From Saccostrea cucullata (Eukaryota): DNA of 64,000 nucleotides. A program made the translations under genes and the position numbers. The first letter of the stretch is position 1; the number at the start of each line of letters is the position of its first letter. Shown here piece after piece: positions 5,919 through 34,237 of this stretch. The stretch lies in assembly GCF_032062105.1 (NCBI RefSeq), contig NW_026927071.1, forward strand, positions 186,001 through 250,000, given 5' to 3'. The notes under the pieces were generated by a model. That model had not been told where the DNA came from. It was given only the letters and a program-made list of their open reading frames with translations, and searched no databases.

Positions 5919-8900
5919 CTACACATGCGTATCATCATCTTCCTCAATGTCCGTAATGAAGTACATGGGGTTCTCTTTCGTGACTCCAGAGTTCTGGTCA
6001 AACGCTTCATCCATTGTCAGGTATTGATCTTTAATGTTAGGTTCCTTACTGTGGCGGGCGTTACCTCTCCTACAATATTAACACAGACTTAAAAAGTTAT
6101 GGACTGTAACTAAATGCAGACAGCTATTTTTCAAGAAGAGGTTGAAAAGTTTGTCATTTATCTCTTTGAATAAGAAATATATGTAGATCTACCATTTATA
6201 GTATAATTATTATCTATATTATACTTGAGATGTTGCAGATAACACGCCAAATTTGTTATGTCTAGTTCAGTAAAATTTTGTTTGAAAAGTTTGAATAAAT
6301 ACAGGTGTACAGAAGAACTCAGGGCATTTTCTTGGATTGGTCAGACTTTCTTTATCAGTAAGTGTAGATGTAATTCAAGAGCGAAGAATGTCGGTGAAAA
6401 GATTCGTGATATTCGTAGGGGTTCTAAAGTTGGTGATGAACTCCATTAAATTTAAACAAACCCTGTAATTAATGCAGAAATACTGCAGATCTTTATTCAT
6501 ACGTACTTACTTCAGTTTTACCACGATAATAATGATGATAACCAGTACGAGAAAGCCACCTCCCGCCCCGGCAAGTATAGGAATATTTTGTTTTATCCAG
6601 CTCTAAAAGATTAAAGAAATTAATGAAAGGCGTGTAAGACCTTTTATTTTGTATTCTATTTCAGCCCGATTTCACTTTTAATAATGCAACAGTTAACATA
6701 AGACTGCTGTGTTTCTTTTTTTGTTTGAAAGTCAATATAAAAAAGGTATCATGACAAAAACTTGAAAGACAAAGCATTCTTATAATTGTCTTTGTTATCA
6801 TTCTCAATGCATTTCTTTATTTTCAATACATTTCTTTCATTTCTCAGATTATTTTTGGGATACATTGTGTTTCTATTAAATAGAATATAGCTCCAATGAA
6901 ATGTTCTTTTCAAAACGCTTTCATGTCTTAAGCATGTTTTTCATTGCAGTCTTTATACAGACTACAGAAGTGTAGGGTTTGAATGTGCTCTGATTTAATT
7001 CTAACAGATATTGTTGAAATAAATGATTAAAACAGTTCAATGTCATGGTTCTTTTGAACTGCTCACATGCTTATGTGAGTGAAAATCATTAAATCTGAAT
7101 TTGTCCAGATTAAGTGGAAAAAATATTAAGCGAAAAAAAAAAATGATAAAACCTTATTATTTGCATCATCTTTGGCTTTCAATCTTGATAGCTCAAAAGG
7201 AAAAGCAGCCTTCAGTTGCGTGTTTGACATCTCTTTAAATTTTGTTTCTAGTCGGTCCCGTGTGAGGGGTTTTCCATCACAAATGACTGGAACTTGAAAG
7301 TCCGTATTCCCGTTGCTTATTGGAAAGAAACAGAATTTATGGTAAAAGAATAGAATTCTGTTAATATACGATAAAGATTTACACATGTCTTAGATAGAAT
7401 ATTTATATACTAGTAACTATGCTAAATATAACTTGAATGTAAATGCATTTACATTTTACGATATTTGTGGGATATCATAAATATAAACATAGAATATTGA
7501 CTAATTTTAATTTTACCTGTATGACAAGGTATGATCCTTTGACAAAACGCTGACGTCATGACATAAAGAGGAACATAAGACCTGTAAGGAGCTTTCTATT
7601 TTATTAAGATCTTGGTCTGTGATATGTCCTGTAAACTCTAGCATTATCTTCTCCACTCCGATTAACCCTATAAGAATAGAACAATATTTATAATTTAAAA
7701 CACTTTTTATAATAATAAAACTCGGTATTTATATATTTCTGCAATGAAAGCATCGTATAAATGGAATAGCAAAACAAAGAAAGATAATTTTTTGTATATA
7801 ATAATTTTTCTTTCTGCATGTAACTGTTTCCAAGAACGTCTGAAATAGTTCTTTGGGAGTGATTGATCTCCTTTCTGTCCTATCCAAACCTAATTTTTAC
7901 AATGAGGAAAGCAATAGTCTTTGAAAAAAAATAACATATACATGTAGTTCAGTTTAAAACTTTGAACCATTTCTCGTGACCCCGTTTCTGTTCTCGGGAT
8001 CACAATTAACCTGATAACTGCAAAACATGAGACCAGATTTGCATATGTATATTTGGAGTTTATGGTATTTGAGAGGTTTAAACAGGTTTTTGTATGCATT
8101 TCCTGCCGACTTTGGGTGAATAATTTTGGTTTCAATTTCGCCACAGGAGAATCTGGGTGAAGAAATCAGACTTATCTTTAAGATATTTGAATAGAAAAGG
8201 ACAAACTATGGCTTTGCCTCTCAAAAGATCTTTTTGTTCTTTTTACAGTTCTTTTTACAGGATGTTCTTTTTTCTTATAAGAAACTTTGCACCATTGTAT
8301 GAGTTTTTGGTACTACCATAAGACAGTTTTGATACATTCAAAATATATACGTATTAATCTAAAAGTTTAAAAGTTAAATATAATTAACTGAATCAAGAAA
8401 AAATAGGATGCATGCCTACTGTAGGTTTTCCATTCAATATTTCACAAGTTCTTCCCGAATGTCCTTCTTGGCAGTTGCACCTAAATGACCCAATAGTGTT
8501 AACACATATTCCGAATCCGGAGCATTTTTGTACTTCGCATTCATCTATATCTTCATCGCATTCTTCTCCTTTCCATCCATCTAAACACACACACTGGAAT
8601 GATCCCGGCAGATTCCGACACGATTTAATATGTTTACACCGGTTCTCTTCGCATTCGTTTACGTCATTATTACATTGCTTTCCCCTCCATCCACGTAGAC
8701 AGGTACAGTTATATCCACCAACGAAATTACGACATGTTGATCCGTGAAAACAAACATCATTGTTGCATTCATTTACGTCATTCTCACAATGTTTGCCCGT
8801 CCAAGAAGACGGACAGTTACAGTGAGCACTACCACGCGTATCTATGCAAGTTCCACCATGTTCACAAGAAAGAATATTGTTTTCGCATTCTTTTATATCT

Positions 8901-11900
8901 TCTGTGCAAGCTGTACCACCCCAACCTTGTCTGCAGTGGCAGGAATAACTGCCATCAGTATTAGTGCAGTTATAACTATTTCTCGTCGAACAAAAGTTAT
9001 CAAACGTACACTCGTTTAGGTCTCTGTCACATGCCTCTCCTACCCAACCTTTCTGACAAGTGCAACTGAAGGATCCTGGAAAGTTAACGCACTGAGAGGC
9101 ATGTTTACAGTCTCCTGTTGAACATTCATTTACGTCTTTCTCACAGGCAGGACCCGTCCAATATGGAGGGCAGATACAATGATAGCTACCGATGTTATCT
9201 ACGCATGTTCCTCCATTACCACAGATATTATTATTTTTACACTCATCAACATTTATTTCGCAGTCCACACCAGTCCATCCAGGAAAACAATCACAAAGAA
9301 ATCCGCCAACTTGATTTGTACAGTTTCCTTTATTATGGCATATATTTTGATCACATTCATTCACATCATTGGCACATTTAGGACCCGTCCAATTTGGGGG
9401 ACATATACAAGAAAAGGAACCAAATATATTTTGACAAGTACCGCCATTCAGGCAGGAGTCACCGCCAAGGCATTCATTAACATCGGCCTGACACCTATCT
9501 CCCTGGTATCCTAAATCACACACGCACTGGAAACTCCCTGCCGTATTTGAACAGTTACCATGATCATTGCAGATACTTGGCTTCAAACATTCATTGACAT
9601 CTTCTTGACAGTTTTGACCAGTCCAGTTCGAGGAACACAGACAGGTATAAGATCCTACATTATTCTGACAAGATCCTTCATGACGACAGGGACTGTACGC
9701 CGTACACTCGTCTACATCTACATTGCAAGTAGTCCCGTTCCATCCAGGATGACAGGAGCATGTAAAAGCTCCTGGGATATTTGAACAGTTTCCATGACTA
9801 TTGCATGCATTCAGGAGACATTCATTTACATCATCTGTACAGTTTTTACCCTTCCAATTTTTGGGACAGTTACATTCATAACCACCTTTGACATTATTAC
9901 ATGTACCCTGATTTTTACAAGGCTGATAGTTTGAGCATTCATCTATGTCTGCATCACAATTTATACCGAACCATCCGCTTGCACAACTGCATTGATATGT
10001 ACCATTAAGATTAGTGCACGTCCCATTGTTTTTGCAAACGTTTAAAAGGCATTCGTTAACGTCTTCTTGGCATCGTTTTCCCTGCCAACCTAAACTACAA
10101 TTACAGTTATATGAATTGTCTGCCAAGTCCGTGCACGTGCCTCCGTGTTCGCATGGTGCTTTCGTGCATTCGGGAATCCTGCTTTCACAGTCTTGTCCAG
10201 TATATCCTGTAAAGTATTTTATGTATTACAGTCAAATTTTTTAGAGGAACAAAATCCAGCATAGATAATGATCACTACACTCTCAATTGTGTAATTTGAT
10301 TTGTTAACATTTAAAGAATGTTGCCTATATTTGGCATTATATAATATTCCATGACCTTCAATATCTAAATAAAATTCGACAATTTTTGCTTACCATCCTG
10401 GCATTGTAAATATCCTTGATTAGTACAGTTTCCGTGGCTAGTGTCAACACAATACCTGGAACACTCATTGCCAAAGAAATGGGTGTTACAGATTAATTCT
10501 CCATAATCATTACATGTTCCATTGTTCGTGTCAACACAGTGTATATTACATTTTGGTCCGAAATAGTTGTCATCACAGATCATGGTGCCCGTCATATTAC
10601 ATCGGCCGTGGCTCCCAGAGACGTGAGAGGAACATCTGCCGGAACAGTCGACTCCATAGAATTCCACATCACACTGGACAGAAATAATCATACTCACCCT
10701 GAATTTGGAAGAAAAAAAAATAAATATTTCTATCTTTATTTACGTCAAAAACCATGTATACGACCACTTATTTTTAATACCGTATTTTAGAGGGTTGAAT
10801 CGGCACCTGTAGCGACAGGAATGAAAAAATAATCATAACATTACTCATCAAGAATATTTTCTGTAAGGTTAGTGTACGTTCCCACTCTATCACGATTGAA
10901 CTACTGAAATAATAAAAAGCCTTAATAGTGTAAAATGTTTTCAGATCCTAGGACATTTTTTTCTGATCTTGATCGTTGATTTTTTTTTTTTACAATCGTG
11001 TTATATTTTTTCTACGATAAACACAACCCTCACATTTTTAATCGTAATCTTCACATCACAGCATACTGCATCGTAACATAGGCAAACAAAACCCCCAGCT
11101 ATTCCGATCGTGAACAAATCGCAACCATAATCTTATGTTATCGTAATATAGCAAATGAGTTCTTCATAAACACATTGAAACCTATATACATGTTTATGTA
11201 AAGGCATAGAAGGTGACGATAGCTTATTCTCTGACTATCCGCCCCAAGACTTTGCTATAAATTAGTTTTACTGTATTGTGAAACAATAAAATATACATCT
11301 TTTATGTAGCTTATACCTTGTCAAATAATTGTAGAGTATTGTGACATTCTGGTTCAAAACATTGGTGTATGCTATCTGGAAGAAGTCCCGTATCATAGTA
11401 CGATTTTTGTTGCCTCCATCAAAGATTAGGAACTCAACAAATGTGTTATTCTGCAACGAAATTGTAATTAAAATTTCAAATATTACGGATGATAATTCTT
11501 AAGAATCAGATTCCTTAAGTCTACTGATTTTTATCCTTATCCATATGATCGAGAAGTTACTGTATACAATGTTATTTTTGGTTATTTTCGGCCTTTAACA
11601 CTTGCAAACCATTTTTCCCGTTTTAAATTCGCCCATTCAATTTTTTTTCGTAAGAGATCATGTGGTGCATTTTTTTTAATTTCGTGACCAAAAGCAACGA
11701 GGCAAATAACAAAGGGATGAAATGCGCCTCTCAAGGTGTTAGAGGTCCATGTTGGCTTTTCCCCGATTTCTATTTCTCTAATGAGTTTTTGAGCTAAGTT
11801 ACTGTTCTTTATCTTTATATTTTATAACATCGAGACAATATCCAGCATAATGTTGCAGCCTGAATTTTATATTGCAAAAATGAAACGATAATGCAAAATG

Positions 11901-25268: not shown

Positions 25269-28200
25269 TTAGTATTGGAAGAAATAAGCCAGCTCCTCCT
25301 CCTCCCTGGAAGCTTGATCCGCCCCGTCATCCTCCCGCTTCTTGTGCCGTGGGGGCTCTGATCGGAACACGAGTTTTCGGCCCGTCTGTAAGTAATGATC
25401 AATGTAAATTTTGAAAAGTATATACGAAACTGTATTCAAAATATTTTCGTAGACTGTATCATTCCAAATCATGAAATCAGTTAATATTTATTTATTTAAT
25501 GTGTCGTAATAAAAAATAATGCCACCTAAAATTATATTTTTCCGTATTCAGGCATGTCCACCAACTACATTGGCCAACATCGATCTTGGTCAGATGAAAA
25601 CCAGTGTATAAGTCTTTCATGATTTTATACAATACTTGTATATATTCTTTCAAGTCAGCTTCATGACATCAGTCTTTTTAAGATATATCTACCTGTTTCT
25701 TTGGCTCGGCCTTCGCCCTCTCTAATGCCTTGCGTACTCTCTCCTCCTGGTGTAGTCTCTGCTGTTCTATCTTTTCCTCTCGTAGTTTTAACCGCCTCTC
25801 CTTATCCTTGGCCTTTATGTCAAACATTCATATATAATCAACTTAAACTGCATGCTTATTTTTTTTATTTCCAAATTCAAAGTTACATTTAGAATTTCGA
25901 AGTTAAAAAATAAAGACAACTTTAGCTTTAAAACTATCTCAAACAATGGTAATCATCCTTTGCATATCTGCCCGCAAACGCATTTTCTTGATTTTAAAGA
26001 TCTATAAGTTTTCGAGAAAATATATTTTTAACATCACAGAAAAGAATCCTCCTTATGACAAACAATGACATTAGAAATGCCGTACATTATTTTTCGCGTG
26101 ATCTGACATACCTTTTCAGCTGCTTCCACTTTATCTTGCGGCATTGTTTCTATCATTTCAAATAATTCCTCTAACCTGTTTTCTATATTAGTTAACATCT
26201 GTAATGTGCTACAATATACATTGAGAAAAAATGCAGTCACTATTATATAGGCATCATATTATATGACTATACACTCCGTATCCGTAGAATAAGCCATGTC
26301 TGTAAACCTCTTGATCAACTGTGATGGGGGCATTGAGATTCAAACTTTGATTTTTTTTTGGCCCGATAGTTTTCGTACATACTTAAATTGTTGCAAAAGT
26401 TTACAGAATTAATTCCTTGTGTTTTCTGTGTTTCTTCATTTTTAGCACTTAGAAACTGTATGATGATTACTCCTACTTGAAAACCTTACTTCTAAACGTT
26501 TTATGACAACACCTCCCCCATATATTTTACTTCAAAAATACGAATAAAATTCTCAGGTTTTCAATCACAATACATATGTCTACTTCACTAGAAATAAATA
26601 AGACTTTCTGCATCCATTTTGTTTGTTTAACGTCCCTTTCCTGAATTTTTCACTCTTTAGGTAGCAATAGACGCTGATTCATTCACAAAATGGCATACAT
26701 TTGACTAAAAAAATTTACATATCTTCCACCTTGTTATTAAATTCACCTTGTTCAACCTGCACCATAGAAGCCAAAAAAAAAAGTATTATAAAGAAAAAAT
26801 TACATTATGTTTCTTCCACCTTGATATTAATATGTTTTTTTTTCAACCAGCACCGTGCCTCAAATATTAAGGAACTGTGTTACCTTCTCCCTTGGATTTT
26901 GAGTAAAATAATGGGTGTCAAGAAAGCACAACACAGTAGGATACTGACAGTCTGTTAAGGCAACCTTCCCCAGATCTCAGAATATATAGGCATGCTGTCC
27001 AGATATGTAAGAGTTATCTCCCTTTTTCAAAACAAAACTAGCGCTATTAATTTTATCTATTAGTAAATTAAAGCACACACATCTAGTAAATGTATTATAA
27101 AATGTTTTAGTTTATGAAAAGACATCTACCATTGAGACATGCTGAAGACATTTTTTCAGCAGTAAATTACACATCTAGAGGGAGATAACTCACTGTTACG
27201 CAAAAGCAGAAGCAGAGCTTATAGAAAAGGAAGCAAATATATGACAATAATGAAATGAATATTTAATAACATCGTAATGTCTATATTTTTTTAGTAAAAG
27301 AGAAAAACTGAGACATGTTTTTCTATTAGAAATGATTTGACAGATATTGAATAAAAATGATATGAAATTCTCTCAGAGTGAAGTCAATGAATAGCACCAT
27401 AAAAGTATAAATATATTTTAAAATTGAATTGATATCATGGATAGCATATGACATTGCTGTTGAAAAGAATGAATTTAGCAAAATAATAAATAAAAGAAAT
27501 GAATCTGTCATAAAATGAAAACGCTATTAGTCATACATTTACAAGTCTGGACAAAAGAAGCACAGGTTGGCTCCAACACCTTGTCACTCAGAGACCTGTA
27601 CGGAAGGTTGCCATGGTTACAGACAGTGCACTAACCTAATGTTTGCCTCATTGTCACCGATACACGACCGATACACCTCCTCCACTCTCGAGTTCAGGGA
27701 ATCTAACATCTTCTGTTGGTCCTCTGCCTTAAATTCGCCATAGGAAAATAACCTAGGTAAAAAGAAAATATAGCCTTAAGATCTAACAAATAAATTTAAA
27801 GTAGATTACAAGTAATTCTTTTACACTGTAACAAAATTTTAACAAAAGAACACATGATGAAAAGAGGTAGGATACTATTCATTCCTATTTTATGTACAAT
27901 TCTGTCAAAAAATCACACATGACGATTCATACATAAAGGACCACATTGCACATTATTTGGATAAGTGGCCATTTCTCATTTCTTTAACTGGTATGAGGAT
28001 AGAAGGTGAGGGAGAGAGAGAGAATCAGAAGGGGACAAAGATGTTTGTTTATAAGGAACAACATATGGTCGTATACTGATAATTAAGTCTTATGGTGCAT
28101 AGTATGGTTTGGATCCTTGGTCTTTACACACATATATGTGACTAAAAATGAATATACATGTATGTTAAAAGATCATGCTTTAAATTTACTATTGTGGTGC

Positions 28201-31200
28201 ATATAAAAGGTTTTCCAAAGCATGCATTACTGCATGGAAGGACTAAGTACAAACCCCAAAATTCCTACTGTCTTAAGCATTTCACTGAACAAAACAATAT
28301 AATCAAATCATGTACAGAAATTATGATAGGAAAAAAATGAGGGAAGCTCTGGCTTTTTTTAATGTGAATATAAAAATATTTCATTTTATTAAGTTTCAAA
28401 TGTTGTTTTCAAGAAAATTTGAAAAGATTTTCATGTATCACAATGATGAAAAAATTCTTTGCACTATATCACACAAAAACAAATAAAAATGACTCAAAGA
28501 AAAATCTCTATATATAATGTTTAATTACCTAGCTTTGATCTTTAAATCTGCTGCTTTTGACTCCTCTTTTGATATCTGTGAATTTAATTTGTCTATTTGT
28601 TCTTTTAATATTGAAGTTTCTTTTTCCCTGAAAAAAAAATCAGAAATAGAATGAATTTCATGAGCAATGGTACATAACATGATAATTGCTTGATATTAAT
28701 ATAAAACTGTAAAATGGCTCTAAATTATAATAAATCAACCCATTTAAAATCTGCTCAGATTTGGCATCTGTGCATTATAGAAACCAGCAATATAATCCAA
28801 TGTGCTGAAAATACTAACTGTTCCTCCAAGTCTGTAAAAATAGATGATTTTTTAATATTCAGACAGACAAACTTCACTAATATAATGTTTGATCGACCGA
28901 GACCATTTTATGGTTTGTATCATCTGCATTATTGTTAGTTACATAAATTTTAACTTTTGTCTGTTTTATAGTTTGCATTATGGTATTACAAAGTTATTTT
29001 CACTTTTATCTCTTTATGTTGTTACATGCATTTTAACTTTTGTCTGTTTTATGGTTTGTATGTTGTTATATGCATTTTAACTTTTGTCTGTTTTATGGTT
29101 TGTATGTTGTTACATGCATTTTAACTTTTGTCTGTTTTATGGTTTGTATGTTGTTACATTTTAACTTTTGTCTGTTTTATGGTTTGTATGTTGTTGCATT
29201 TTAACTTTTGTCTGTTTTATGGTTTGTATGTTGTTGCATTTTAACTTTTGTCTGTTTTATGGTTTGTATGTTGTTACATTTTAATTTTTGTCTGTTTTAT
29301 GGTTTGTATGTTGTTGCATTTTAACTTTTGTCTGTTTTATGGTTTGTATGTTGTTACATTTTAACTTTTGTCTGTTTTATGGTTTGTATGTTGTTACATT
29401 TTAACTTTTGTCTGTTTTATGGTTTGTATGTTGTTACATGCATTTTAACTTTTGTCTGTTTTATGGTTTGTATGTTGTTACATGCATTTTAACTTTTGTT
29501 TGTTTTATGGTTTGAATGTTGTTACATGCATTTTAACTTTTGTCTGTTTTAAGGTTTGTATGTTGTTGCATTCTAACTTTTGTCTGTTTTATGGTTTGTA
29601 TGTTGTTACATACATTTCTTTTACTTTTATCTGTTTTATGGTTTGTATGCATTTTAACATTTGTCTGTTCTATGGTTTGTATGTTGTTACATGCATTTTA
29701 ACTTTTGTCTGTTTTATGGTTCGATAATGTTACATGCATTTTAACATTTGTCTGTTTTATGGTTTGTATGTTGTTACATGCATTTTAACTTTTGTCTGTT
29801 TTTTGGTTTGTATGTTGTTATTTACATTTTAACATTTTAACTTTTGTTTGTTTTATGGTTTTTTGTATGATGTTATATTGTTTTATGGTTTGTTTGTATG
29901 GTGTTACATACATTTTAACTTTTGTCTGTTTTATGGTTTGTTTCATTTCTTCTAACGCTTCCTCAGTTTCTTGACTGTTTTGAATTAGAGATAAATTCTG
30001 CTCTTCTAAATCTGCAAAAATGTCCAGCAGTTCCTGTGGATGTGAGAAGAACAATTCCAAATCCTGAAATTAAAAAAAAAGTATGTAAGCTACTTATAAT
30101 TGATGAAAGGTAGGTACATTAAAACATGATCATAACAAACAGGCTTCATTAAATAATGTTTACAATGAAATGATTTTCATTCTCAATAGCTTACAAAATA
30201 TATTGCAGTTATAACAGATATTACATGTATAATGAATTATGTTTATGACAAAGCAATATATCGATTCCTTGGAACTTTACTATAAGTGCGGTACGTATTC
30301 TGCATTAGGTAGATGATAACATGATATTTTGATAATCGGTTGAAAAAAGAGAAAAATCCAGTTTATGGAAACTCATAAAGATAATAGTCTCCTTGCTATT
30401 TATAGACACTTCTCCTATACAATGTACCTCATCACTCTCTTCATCTTCTTCTTCATCTTCCTCTGGTCTAAATGAGAAAATATCAAAAAAATCTTACAGC
30501 TATTATATCTTTCTATGCATGATATTTTCATTGATGGTTTGACTAAATTCCATTTGATTTATTCATATTTGATTTCTTAAAACAAAAAATGTTATATCAT
30601 TGACATCAAATACTTTTTGTCACAGGGTTTGAACAAAAATGAAATTCAAGTAATGTTACCCAGTAAGCCCAGTATAATACTTGTTGAAATTGAACTTTTG
30701 GTTTGAGATTGTACTTACTTTTTGGCTGGGGGTTTTGAGACCGGTGGGGGAGGGGGTTTTGGCATCGCTTTCTTTTTGCCCTTGAAATCTTTGGGATCTG
30801 ATTCTAAAAGACTCTTTTTGTAAGCAATCATCTCTTGTTCTTTTGCCTTCTTTCTCTCTTCACGTCTCTTCTTTTTCTGTTTTTCTTTTTTGTCTCGCCA
30901 ATCCTGTTTTAGTTTTAAAGATTAAATATAAAACATGCATTTAAAAATTTTCAGTGTTTTTGAAAAAAAATTCACAAATTCTAAAGGTTATCACAACTGT
31001 GTATCTGCTTTACAGAATATGAGAAAAATAGGGGGGCATACAAGAGAAAAAGATAAGCATAATTATATAAATAATAATTGATGATACAGCTAATAGAAAA
31101 AATAAAATTTAGAGGAGCATGTGCAGTACCCTCTAGAGGTATTTATCTTCCTGTAAGCAGAATATGTAGATAATAAGCTGTGCCACCATAGCCCACAAAC

Positions 31201-34200
31201 CTGAGGTGTAAGATTGTCCAAAAACTTTCTGTACATTTGATATTCTTTCAGTGTGTCTTCGTATTTAGAAATCTCCGATTTGATTGCCATCATTGCTGCA
31301 TTAACCTTCTTTATCTCGGCTACCTTTTCAAGTTTAGCTTTTGTTTCATTCTCTGCCCTGTTGTTATAAATCCAAAATATTACTTATATGATTATAAATG
31401 TTCCATACCCACCATAAACAGTTGATTTTAAAAAATGTTGATTGAAAACATCAATCAAAAACTGTGACATTATATTTTTTTTCAAATTATTTCATCAACA
31501 GATAACAAATTGAAAGTCTAGGCCATTTCAAATTATCTCCATAATACACATATTTGGCAACAATCTAAATGATCCCAAATCATAATGCAGGCCTCTCAAT
31601 ACTGCTAAAAATATGGAAAAAACAAGCAGCTTAACTTTAAAACCATCCTGCCTACTAAGTGCATATAACCACAAATAGGTTGTAACACTGGTGAATTCAA
31701 TATACTAGTAGCACATGACCAACCCTTTGGTGTAACCTCCACCCAGGGACTTTAATATGCCTTTACCTGATTCTCTAACCTGCATGCTCATAAAGCACAC
31801 TTCACTTCATGCTACACAAACCTTGGGAGTAAGTCTGTCTAAGAACTTTCTGTACATTTCAAACTCCCTCAACATATCCTCAATTTTTGTGATTTCTGAG
31901 CGAACAGTCATGATAATGCTCGAGATTTGTTTTATCTCTAAAACTTTTTCCATTTTCTCCCTGCTTTCCTTCTCACAACTAAATTTAAATAGATGTCAAG
32001 GTTTTCATTCTTTATTATTCTTTTCCTTGATCGAAAGGATTCAGGAAATTATAATTATATGCTCCACAAAGTTACGCATATAAAACTTTGTGCTATGCAA
32101 ATTCCATCACTAAAAGATGCATTTCAGTAGTTAGTATTTTATTTCAGTTAAATTTGCTAACATAAAATATTCTCTTTTTTTATATAAGAAAAAAAGTTTT
32201 GAATAAGGAAAAAGACTAAACATGGCTTTCTCTCGAGGAATTAGTTTATACTTACTCTCGAACAGCCTCGTTTGACCCATGGTCGTTTTCTTTGAGGAAT
32301 TCATCAAACATGGCGGCATCCTCCTGTAAGTAGAGCTCCGCCAGGTCCAGCTTCTTCTCCTCCGCCTGCGAGATCTCCTCCAGTTTACTCATCTCATTTC
32401 TCTTTACTCCCAGAGAGTACTAAATAAACAAAATATTATTGCAAATACTAAACTAAAGAAAGACCAAGAAAATTGATTGAAATAAACTTGAGGAGGTTTT
32501 ACATACTTGGACTAGAAACATCTCCCTCTTCTTGGCGATGTATTCTGCTAGAGATTCTTTTTCAACATGTCGGTCTACAACAATAAAAAATAAAAATCAC
32601 ATAAGCAAAATATCATATATTTCAAAGATTATCCAGGAGAGGACCCTTTTAGTTTGTTCACAAAATAGTGTAAATTAAAATTTAAAAACCTCATTATTTT
32701 GAACTTGATGGAATCCCCCCTCCCCTTTCAAAAAGATTTGAGATAATTGTGGACTTGAGATGGTAAAGATATAATGTTTAGAACTTCAAATTCATTTCAA
32801 CATATCCTTTGTATTTAAGATACCCATGTTTGAGATGCCACAGTTCAATTGTATATTTTTCTATTACATAATGAAGCTTCAGATAGGTTTGCATGGTAAG
32901 AAGAACACAAGCATTGCCTTGTATTTAGCCTCACCTCTGGTGACTGCAATAGTGTGTTCTGGATCATCTTTTACTGCAATGGCCTTATCTGAATCCTCCA
33001 TTTCCTTCTCTTCATCGGAATCTACCGGTTTGATCATTGATGCTGTGCGAAAATTTACTTTTGATGCGTATGTTGTTTTTTCATGGACTCTTAGTTTACG
33101 TTGTTTTTCCCTTTCCTATTAAAGTAATCAATAAAAAATAATAAATTACTTATAAACAACATGGTTCTTTAAGAATATTGATTTTATTATTGTATTGAAA
33201 ACACAAAGTGGGAAGTAAAATTAAATTAGATTTAAAGAGAAACTTTACCAAACCAAAATTAAATAATCAATCAATGAATAATTACCATCTTTTTCCTCTG
33301 CCTTTCCTTGTCTCTGAGAACAAAAATATCACTGTCTGCAGGCATTTTGAAAGGATTTCCTTGAGGAACAAGTTCATCTATGAAAGACATACAAAAAAAA
33401 AAATTAAAATACCCTTAGTAGTAAGTCAAATCTCCATGTACTATAGTACATACATTTTTAAATATTTTTATGCAAAGTAACAAAGCACTCACTAAAATTC
33501 AATTTCAGATCAAATTAGATGAAAATATCAGGGTGTCCCATTGACCCAAGGACCATGGAATTTCCCTGCATATATTGCCATAATCCCCTGGTTATTTGAG
33601 TATCCCCACTCAACCCCCTGTTTTGGGAGGAACCCCATACATTCTTCTACTTTTTGTAAGCTACATGTATTTCAGTTCTTAGGGACAACTCTGAGATATT
33701 AGGACTATAGCTATCATAAGAGTAAAATAAAAGACTATATATTTACATGTAACACTTTTTTTTTAAGTCGAAACAAATAACATGAATAATGAGATAAATA
33801 TGATAAATATATAAATTATCAGAATGCCTAAAAACATTGACAAGTTCTTAATCATATTATACTCATATAAATTTACAACATTATATTATATGATTATAAA
33901 AACAATACCTGACAATACAGTTGATACAGATTTGGCAGAGTTTGGGAAAGTAACTCTCCCAGATTGCCTCGACCCATCTTGTCCTATAAATATAGATCAA
34001 ATCTGTTTTAAAAACATAATGGTTCAAAATATATACAACAGTAAAATTTAAAAGTCTTTCAATAAAATGTTCATATTCATCTTGCCATACAAAAAGTTCC
34101 CATAAATACCATATGTTTTTGTTTTTTTAGAACCAATTTTAAAGGTCTGTGTATTGTTATTTGAACTTACTAGATTTTTTCCCAGAAACCTCTGAGTTAG

Positions 34201-34237
34201 GTGAAACTGCATTAGATCTGGTCGGTGAATCTGCCAT
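25269..34237 (-). CDS. CFAP100: Cilia- and flagella-associated protein 100 (CCDC37/CCDC38 family, DUF4200)
   Basis: Exons 34237-34171, 33983-33909, 33377-33286, 33115-32935, 32574-32507, 32419-32256, [31978-31822 OR 31357-31201], 30903-30719, 30467-30428, 30063-29912, 28627-28529, 27752-27636, 26208-26112, 25812-25693, 25385-25269. Motifs KKREMFLVQYSL, AAMFDEFLKEND, LEEQNLSLIQNSQE, GRKLVFRSEPP. Confidence 0.9.
28890..29945. repeat. 40/44-bp minisatellite derived from the 3' end and donor site of a CFAP100 exon
   Basis: Unit ttttaacttttgtctgttttatggtttgtatgttgttaca(tgca). The last copy is the coding sequence KQTIKQTKVKM at 29912-29945. Confidence 0.9.

Follow-up and report, generated by a model that had tools for sequence, protein, structure and literature searches.

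Tandem duplication of a frame-breaking exon in the CFAP100 gene of Saccostrea and its probable use as a mutually exclusive pair

Does a ciliary gene of the bivalve Saccostrea cucullata choose between two versions of one exon and, if so, how is that choice enforced and how old is it? The question is raised by a 64,000-nt stretch of genomic DNA (NCBI RefSeq assembly GCF_032062105.1, contig NW_026927071.1, positions 186,001 to 250,000 of the forward strand), referred to here as the window and numbered from its first nucleotide. An earlier note on the window had proposed that two neighboring 157-nt exons of CFAP100 are spliced in a mutually exclusive manner. CFAP100 (FAP100) is a subunit of the MIA complex, where it pairs with CFAP73 in an axonemal coiled coil and regulates inner-arm dynein I1/f, as established from Chlamydomonas and human structures. 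Frame-enforced mutually exclusive exons that arose by tandem exon duplication have been catalogued in animals. The analysis presented here makes it very probable that the two exons arose by tandem duplication in Saccostrea CFAP100 (CCDC37, with a DUF4200 domain) and that each mature transcript carries only one of them. As a splicing mechanism this is ordinary, and the pair belongs to a well-known kind. A search of the literature turned up no description of alternative CFAP100 exons or of the bivalve pair.

The duplicated exon lies in CFAP100

The host gene is encoded on the minus strand, where tblastn matches to the S. cucullata protein XP_062611570.1 (annotated as "cilia- and flagella-associated protein 100-like") run from position 34237 to 25272 and define a CFAP100/CCDC37-like gene of about 15 coding exons (25272..34237). 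Where they align cleanly, the window's exons are 96 to 100% identical to this protein. The orthologue from Ostrea edulis matches human CFAP100 (PDB entry 8J07, chain 8j07_j4) with an E value of 1e-117 and Chlamydomonas FAP100 (8GLV) with 1e-85, compared to 4e-09 for CFAP73; homology to CFAP100 in the axoneme structures (8J07, 8GLV, and 9FQR) is full-length, with E values of 1e-117, 1e-103, and 1e-85. A full-length search seeded with a Biomphalaria representative likewise returned many mollusc proteins named CFAP100-like. The remaining DUF4200 genes of the S. cucullata genome sit on other contigs. By these comparisons the gene is an orthologue of CFAP100 rather than of its paralogues CFAP73, CCDC42, or CCDC38, and the gene name given in the earlier note stands. 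For the oyster protein, the formation of an axonemal coiled coil with CFAP73 and the modulation of dynein I1/f are assumed by orthology.

The genomic neighborhood was surveyed in several relatives. A gene for RNase P p30 is arranged head to head with CFAP100 in S. echinata (locus L014), Pinctada (L016), and C. virginica (L017), and in the 5′ flank of the C. virginica gene it is followed by an amidohydrolase gene. The conserved RNase P p30 neighborhood fits the assignment of these genes as CFAP100 orthologues. In a limited test of DUF4200 paralogues in the same genome (contigs C3984 and C1375), no duplicated exon was found within 10 kb for each.

Two exons of equal length, phase, and domain

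Reading in the direction of transcription, the upstream constitutive exon (32419-32256, minus strand; 164 nt) runs from phase 0 to phase 2 and ends ..CGAGA, 2 nt into a codon, immediately before the donor GTAAGT. It is followed by exon A (31978-31822, i.e., 31822..31978; 157 nt), which has the acceptor TTTAG and the donor GTTTGT, and, after an intron of 464 nt (31821-31358, i.e., 31358..31821), by exon B (31357-31201, i.e., 31201..31357; 157 nt), which has the acceptor ACAG and again the donor GTTTGT. The downstream constitutive exon (30903-30719; 185 nt) is entered in phase 0 and has the donor GTAAGT. Exons A and B each contribute 1 nt that finishes a codon, followed by 52 codons, so that both are entered in phase 2 and left in phase 0. 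Every structural element that the earlier note had described (two exons of 157 nt, a phase 2 to phase 0 transition, AG acceptors, GTTTGT donors, and an open frame) was reproduced on the minus strand, and translation gave exactly the two peptides that it had listed.

The peptides of the two copies align by BLASTP without gaps over their whole length, with 28/52 identities (54%), 43/52 positives, and an E value of 3e-23, a likeness far beyond chance. The earlier estimate that the copies share under half of their residues was therefore slightly off, while the ungapped alignment and the two open frames bear out its observation that neither stops nor indels separate them. When exon A was searched against the whole 1.17-Gb genome, A and B were the sole matches. 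Both copies also complete the same domain: the upstream exon covers positions 23-66 of Pfam DUF4200 (PF13863), exon A matches positions 69-119 (E value, 3.8e-10), and exon B matches positions 68-119 (E value, 3e-14), such that positions 23-119 are covered once A and B are included. With scores of 36.1, 40.6, and 53.8 bits, respectively, the upstream exon, exon A, and exon B exceed the Pfam cutoff of 29.7. The two copies are thus homologous neighbors that match in length and phase and have usable splice sites.

The reading frame separates productive from unproductive transcripts

To follow the consequences of each splicing choice, exons were joined computationally. Transcripts that carry the upstream exon, either A or B, and the downstream exon read through in both cases. 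With both copies included, a stop occurs at the fourth codon of B; with both copies skipped, a stop occurs 26 codons past the junction, within the next exon. Since 157 is not divisible by three, an mRNA that includes both exons or lacks both meets an early stop and encodes no full-length protein, as the earlier note had anticipated from the exon length. The device that acts against productive double inclusion or skipping is the frame, and misspliced forms of either kind would be removed by nonsense-mediated decay (NMD). The window pair shares with the catalogued frame-enforced mutually exclusive exons its adjacency, homology, equal length and phase, and a length that is not a multiple of three.

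Other enforcing devices of known mutually exclusive exons are steric block, U12-type splice sites, and docking/selector pairing, the last of which relies on conserved complementary intronic elements (one for each variant and a common docking site). The intron between the copies measures 464 nt here and 449 to 958 nt in relatives, compared to the roughly 50 to 60 nt or less from donor to branch point that we took as the steric limit, so steric exclusion does not apply. Both donors begin with GT and lack a U12-type consensus. Inverted-repeat scans gave short matches at chance level, none of which was common to the window and Ostrea. In all, neither a steric nor a U12-type mechanism is evident, and the inverted-repeat scans gave no sign of RNA pairing.

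The same arrangement could be read in another way. Exon A might be a cassette that is spliced in together with B rather than a replacement for it, either exposing the transcript to NMD and so lowering CFAP100 output (a "poison" exon) or yielding a protein truncated three residues after A. The stop at the fourth codon of B would provide for this, an intron of 464 nt poses no physical obstacle to double inclusion, and the annotations available for Saccostrea show B-containing proteins only. We nevertheless regard a cassette of this kind as quite improbable. A poison exon needs no kept reading frame, whereas exon A has a dN/dS of 0.05 to 0.10 when read in frame with the upstream exon. A truncated product, for its part, would not need a length of exactly 157 nt; yet no indel has entered this exon in five species whose alternative copies share 17-24/52 residues between lineages. 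Finally, gene models from Ostrea and Mytilus (discussed below) are full-length with A alone. We therefore return to mutually exclusive use as the preferred reading.

Both copies are maintained by coding selection

Exon B is the ancestral, canonical copy and is nearly invariant: the peptides of Ostrea, S. echinata, and C. virginica match that of the window at 100% identity, and those of the other molluscs compared do so at 73 to 85%. Between the window and either S. echinata or Ostrea, no amino acid change was seen in B (pN, 0; dN/dS, 0). The upstream exon behaves similarly, with a peptide that is 100% identical across Ostrea, Crassostrea/Magallana, and Saccostrea.

For exon A, the derived alternative copy, orthologous exons are present both in S. 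echinata (L014) and in O. edulis (L001); each is open and exactly 157 nt long. In the comparison of the window with S. echinata, pS is 0.28 and pN is 0.035 (dN/dS, 0.10). In the comparison with Ostrea, for which synonymous sites are near saturation, pS is 0.65 and pN is 0.075 (dN/dS, 0.05; Fisher P value, 5e-10), and exon A retains 82% nucleotide identity and 45/52 residues. Exon A is thus a fast-evolving copy under strong purifying selection. The three introns of this region, when compared between the window and Ostrea, score no better than about 2 to 3 standard deviations above shuffled sequence, with the exception of the intron after B, whose higher score comes entirely from the conserved 28 nt at its start. 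A pseudo-exon evolving neutrally would have lost its similarity as the introns have; the exon A orthologues contain no stops, and their dN/dS lies far from 1. The proposal that both copies are old and under selection is accordingly upheld by the dN/dS values of each exon among the oysters compared (0.05 to 0.10 for A and 0 for B), by the open 157-nt orthologues in two other species, and by introns that can no longer be aligned.

These data also bear on whether exon A could be an unused relic in S. cucullata that is no longer spliced and is open by chance or through recent inactivation. No exon A isoform is annotated in S. cucullata or S. echinata, and the complete loss of A from Crassostrea/Magallana makes the exon dispensable in some oysters; a relic would account for both. 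Against it, the two Saccostrea species differ at 12/157 nucleotides of exon A, the differences are mostly synonymous (dN/dS, 0.10), and the splice sites are identical. At the greater distance of Ostrea, the introns have lost any similarity while A keeps its 82% nucleotide identity and an open frame. A relic is on this evidence very unlikely.

Isoforms with A or B are annotated in relatives

The clearest counterpart comes from O. edulis, which belongs to a different genus and has the same exon pair in the orthologous gene. Its genomic contig (L001), reached by an exon A word search that matched one short genomic open reading frame (ORF) on a Logan contig, has the same exon order, lengths, and splice sites as the window. 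RefSeq lists two isoforms for this gene: X1 (XP_055999216.1), which carries B, and X2 (XP_055999217.1), which carries A and was found within the 90% cluster of X1. Each is 592 amino acids (aa) long, and the 22 positions that distinguish them all fall within residues 217-269. In this interval, X1 is identical to the window B peptide, and X2 is exactly the exon A peptide of the Ostrea contig. In Mytilus californianus, the differences between isoforms X1 and X2, each 581 aa long, are confined to residues 217-265, and in M. galloprovincialis the two types appear as separate protein models (VDI26691 and VDI26690). Mutually exclusive use is thus supported indirectly, by RefSeq models with A only or B only (O. 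edulis and M. californianus) together with coding selection on both copies, and S. cucullata would be expected to splice the pair exclusively as well.

Across relatives, the order of upstream exon, alternative copy, canonical copy, and downstream exon is found in the two Saccostrea species, Ostrea, Pinctada, and Mytilus. The alternative copy retains AG/GT splice sites and a length of exactly 157 nt in all five species that have one. In Mytilus californianus (L015) it lies 5′ of the canonical exon. In Pinctada imbricata (L016:6667-6823; GCA_033119305.1), an open 157-nt exon with AG/GT sites also lies 5′ of the canonical copy and is 42% identical to B. This exon is not part of the annotated protein KAK3102468.1 and is probably an unannotated alternative exon. 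The alternative copy is absent from C. virginica (L017), in which the upstream intron measures only 167 nt, and from Crassostrea/Magallana-like contigs (L003/4 and L006/7), in which the introns measure 540 to 616 nt. A search of the Crassostrea-type introns for an exon A remnant gave nothing above shuffled controls.

At the protein level, all cnidarian, deuterostome, gastropod, and heteroconch bivalve sequences examined are of the canonical type. In Mercenaria, Dreissena, Mizuhopecten, and Argopecten, annotated isoforms differ in length, and the ones examined all carry the canonical exon. A search of representative proteins with exon A returned the Ostrea fragment as its sole A-type protein. 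The strongest match over the full length of the exon (P0027; 65%) was rejected as an A-type sequence; it derives from a single exon, present in one copy, of a metagenome eukaryote (L008). A word search with the upstream exon returned genomic ORFs that end at the exon boundary and no spliced fragments. The canonical exon is present in every transcript-sized Logan protein examined, but the majority of these are from Crassostrea, in which exon A is absent. Given that these Logan proteins are canonical and that the RefSeq proteins of S. cucullata and S. echinata carry B only, use of exon A may be rare or confined to a particular tissue or stage.

The pair is thus already implicit in the database models of relatives and unannotated in the Saccostrea lineage: O. 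edulis has an annotated A isoform, whereas S. cucullata and S. echinata have the B isoform alone. Existing annotations could be improved in both cases identified here, by adding exon A to the Saccostrea models and the matching exon to the Pinctada model.

Age of the duplication

Alternative copies have diverged much further than canonical ones, sharing 17-24/52 residues between lineages compared to 40-52 for canonical copies. The alternative peptides of Pinctada and Mytilus share 17-24/52 residues with oyster A, no more than they share with B. In a tree built from the 52 alignment columns, all alternative copies fall on one side of a branch, with weak support (64/73) and very long branches, and topologies that group each alternative copy with the canonical exon beside it are not rejected (p-AU, 0.2 to 0.3). 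Three residues considered as markers of common origin (R6, E7, and S19) were set aside, as they also occur in the canonical exons of other animals.

Two histories were weighed: a single old duplication followed by loss in Crassostreinae and three parallel duplications at one and the same place. The former appears more likely. Mytilus and Pinctada resemble the window in that the same exon is duplicated, the divergent copy lies on the 5′ side, both copies are 157 nt long, and the canonical copy is followed by GTTTGTG..GGTGCAC. A common origin of oyster A and the Mytilus and Pinctada copies is likely.

A conserved intronic element follows exon B

The only intronic block that can be aligned between the window and Ostrea is the 28 nt that begin with the exon B donor (31173..31200, minus strand), of which 24 are identical. 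The block has the form GTTTGTG..GGTG(G)CAC, and its counterparts can be recognized at the start of the intron after the canonical exon in more distant bivalves: the sequence reads GTTTGTGGGCTATGGTGGCAC in Saccostrea, GTTTGTGGGTTCAGGTGGCAC in Ostrea, GTTTGTGGTATAAGGGTGCAC in Pinctada, and GTTTGTGTGATGGGGTGCAC in Mytilus. At four Crassostrea/Magallana-type loci the motif is absent, and unrelated sequence occupies its place. Among the loci compared, the motif after the canonical exon is therefore seen only in species with the exon pair.

The element at 31173-31200 is a candidate splicing regulator. A hairpin predicted for the exon B donor has no greater stability than shuffled sequence, and the inverted-repeat scan returned no conserved complementary partner for the element.

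Predicted effect of the exchange on the protein

Under mutually exclusive use, each mRNA would take either A or B, and the two proteins would have the same number of residues, with the exchange limited to 53 of them, encoded by the junction codon and the 52 that follow it, at about residues 216-268. This segment corresponds to approximately residues 218-269 of human CFAP100, inside a stretch that also aligns with CFAP73. The exchange would therefore affect the C-terminal half of the DUF4200 coiled coil, in the region that aligns with CFAP73 in solved axonemes. For CFAP100 in the human (8J07), Chlamydomonas (8GLV), and 9FQR structures, we found no report of an alternative version of the segment.

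Within the exon-encoded peptide, positions 15, 18, 22, 25, 29, 32, 36, 39, and 46 are hydrophobic in every copy, and position 43 is R or K. The 3-4 spacing of these positions is typical of a coiled-coil core, and many of the positions between the heptad core residues differ between A and B. Exon A keeps the hydrophobic heptad positions and alters many surface residues. This pattern fits the idea, put forward in the earlier note, that the isoforms present different coiled-coil surfaces. The isoforms may also differ in function; the assignment of one to sperm flagella and the other to gill or larval cilia is speculation.

A more ambitious scenario can be formulated, which we consider possible but doubtful. 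Here, one ancient duplication, at least as old as the ancestor that mussels, pearl oysters, and true oysters share, would have persisted over hundreds of millions of years and would act as a switch between two MIA complexes made from one gene and hence between two dynein I1/f motility settings (e.g., for sperm flagella versus gill or larval cilia). The switch would be controlled through the GTTTGTG..GGTG(G)CAC element after B, and exon and element would have been lost together in Crassostrea/Magallana. Bivalves depend on gill cilia for feeding, on larval cilia for swimming, and on flagella for external fertilization. A conserved either-or exon would mean that some of them tune cilia and flagella by splicing one gene, not by means of paralogues. 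Ostrea and Saccostrea, in which the pair is present, and Crassostrea/Magallana, in which it has been lost, offer a natural comparison.

Other features of the window and genome

Several further observations were made in the course of the analysis. On contig C3984, a block of short tandem repeats with many mutually similar ORFs on both strands occupies approximately positions 700-1500 of locus L028 (G000:C3984:36000-45999), a few kilobases from a CFAP73/CCDC42-like DUF4200 gene in which no duplicated exon was seen. Within the window, a minisatellite at 29015-29941 comprises about 20 copies of a 40- to 44-nt unit with 84 to 87% matches. It abuts the CFAP100 exon at 30066-29911, with an overlap of about 30 nt, occupies the first part of the next intron, and yields a ladder of spurious plus-strand ORFs. 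On the minus strand, 8396-10126 is a single open frame of 577 aa made up almost wholly of calcium-binding EGF repeats (13 EGF_CA stretches; E value, 2e-94); it probably represents a large exon from an EGF-repeat gene resembling Notch, fibropellin, or teneurin. On the plus strand, 1090-1734 is an uninterrupted ORF of 214 aa with EF-hand matches (EF-hand_7; E value, 3e-11), which looks like an intronless gene for a calcium-binding protein.
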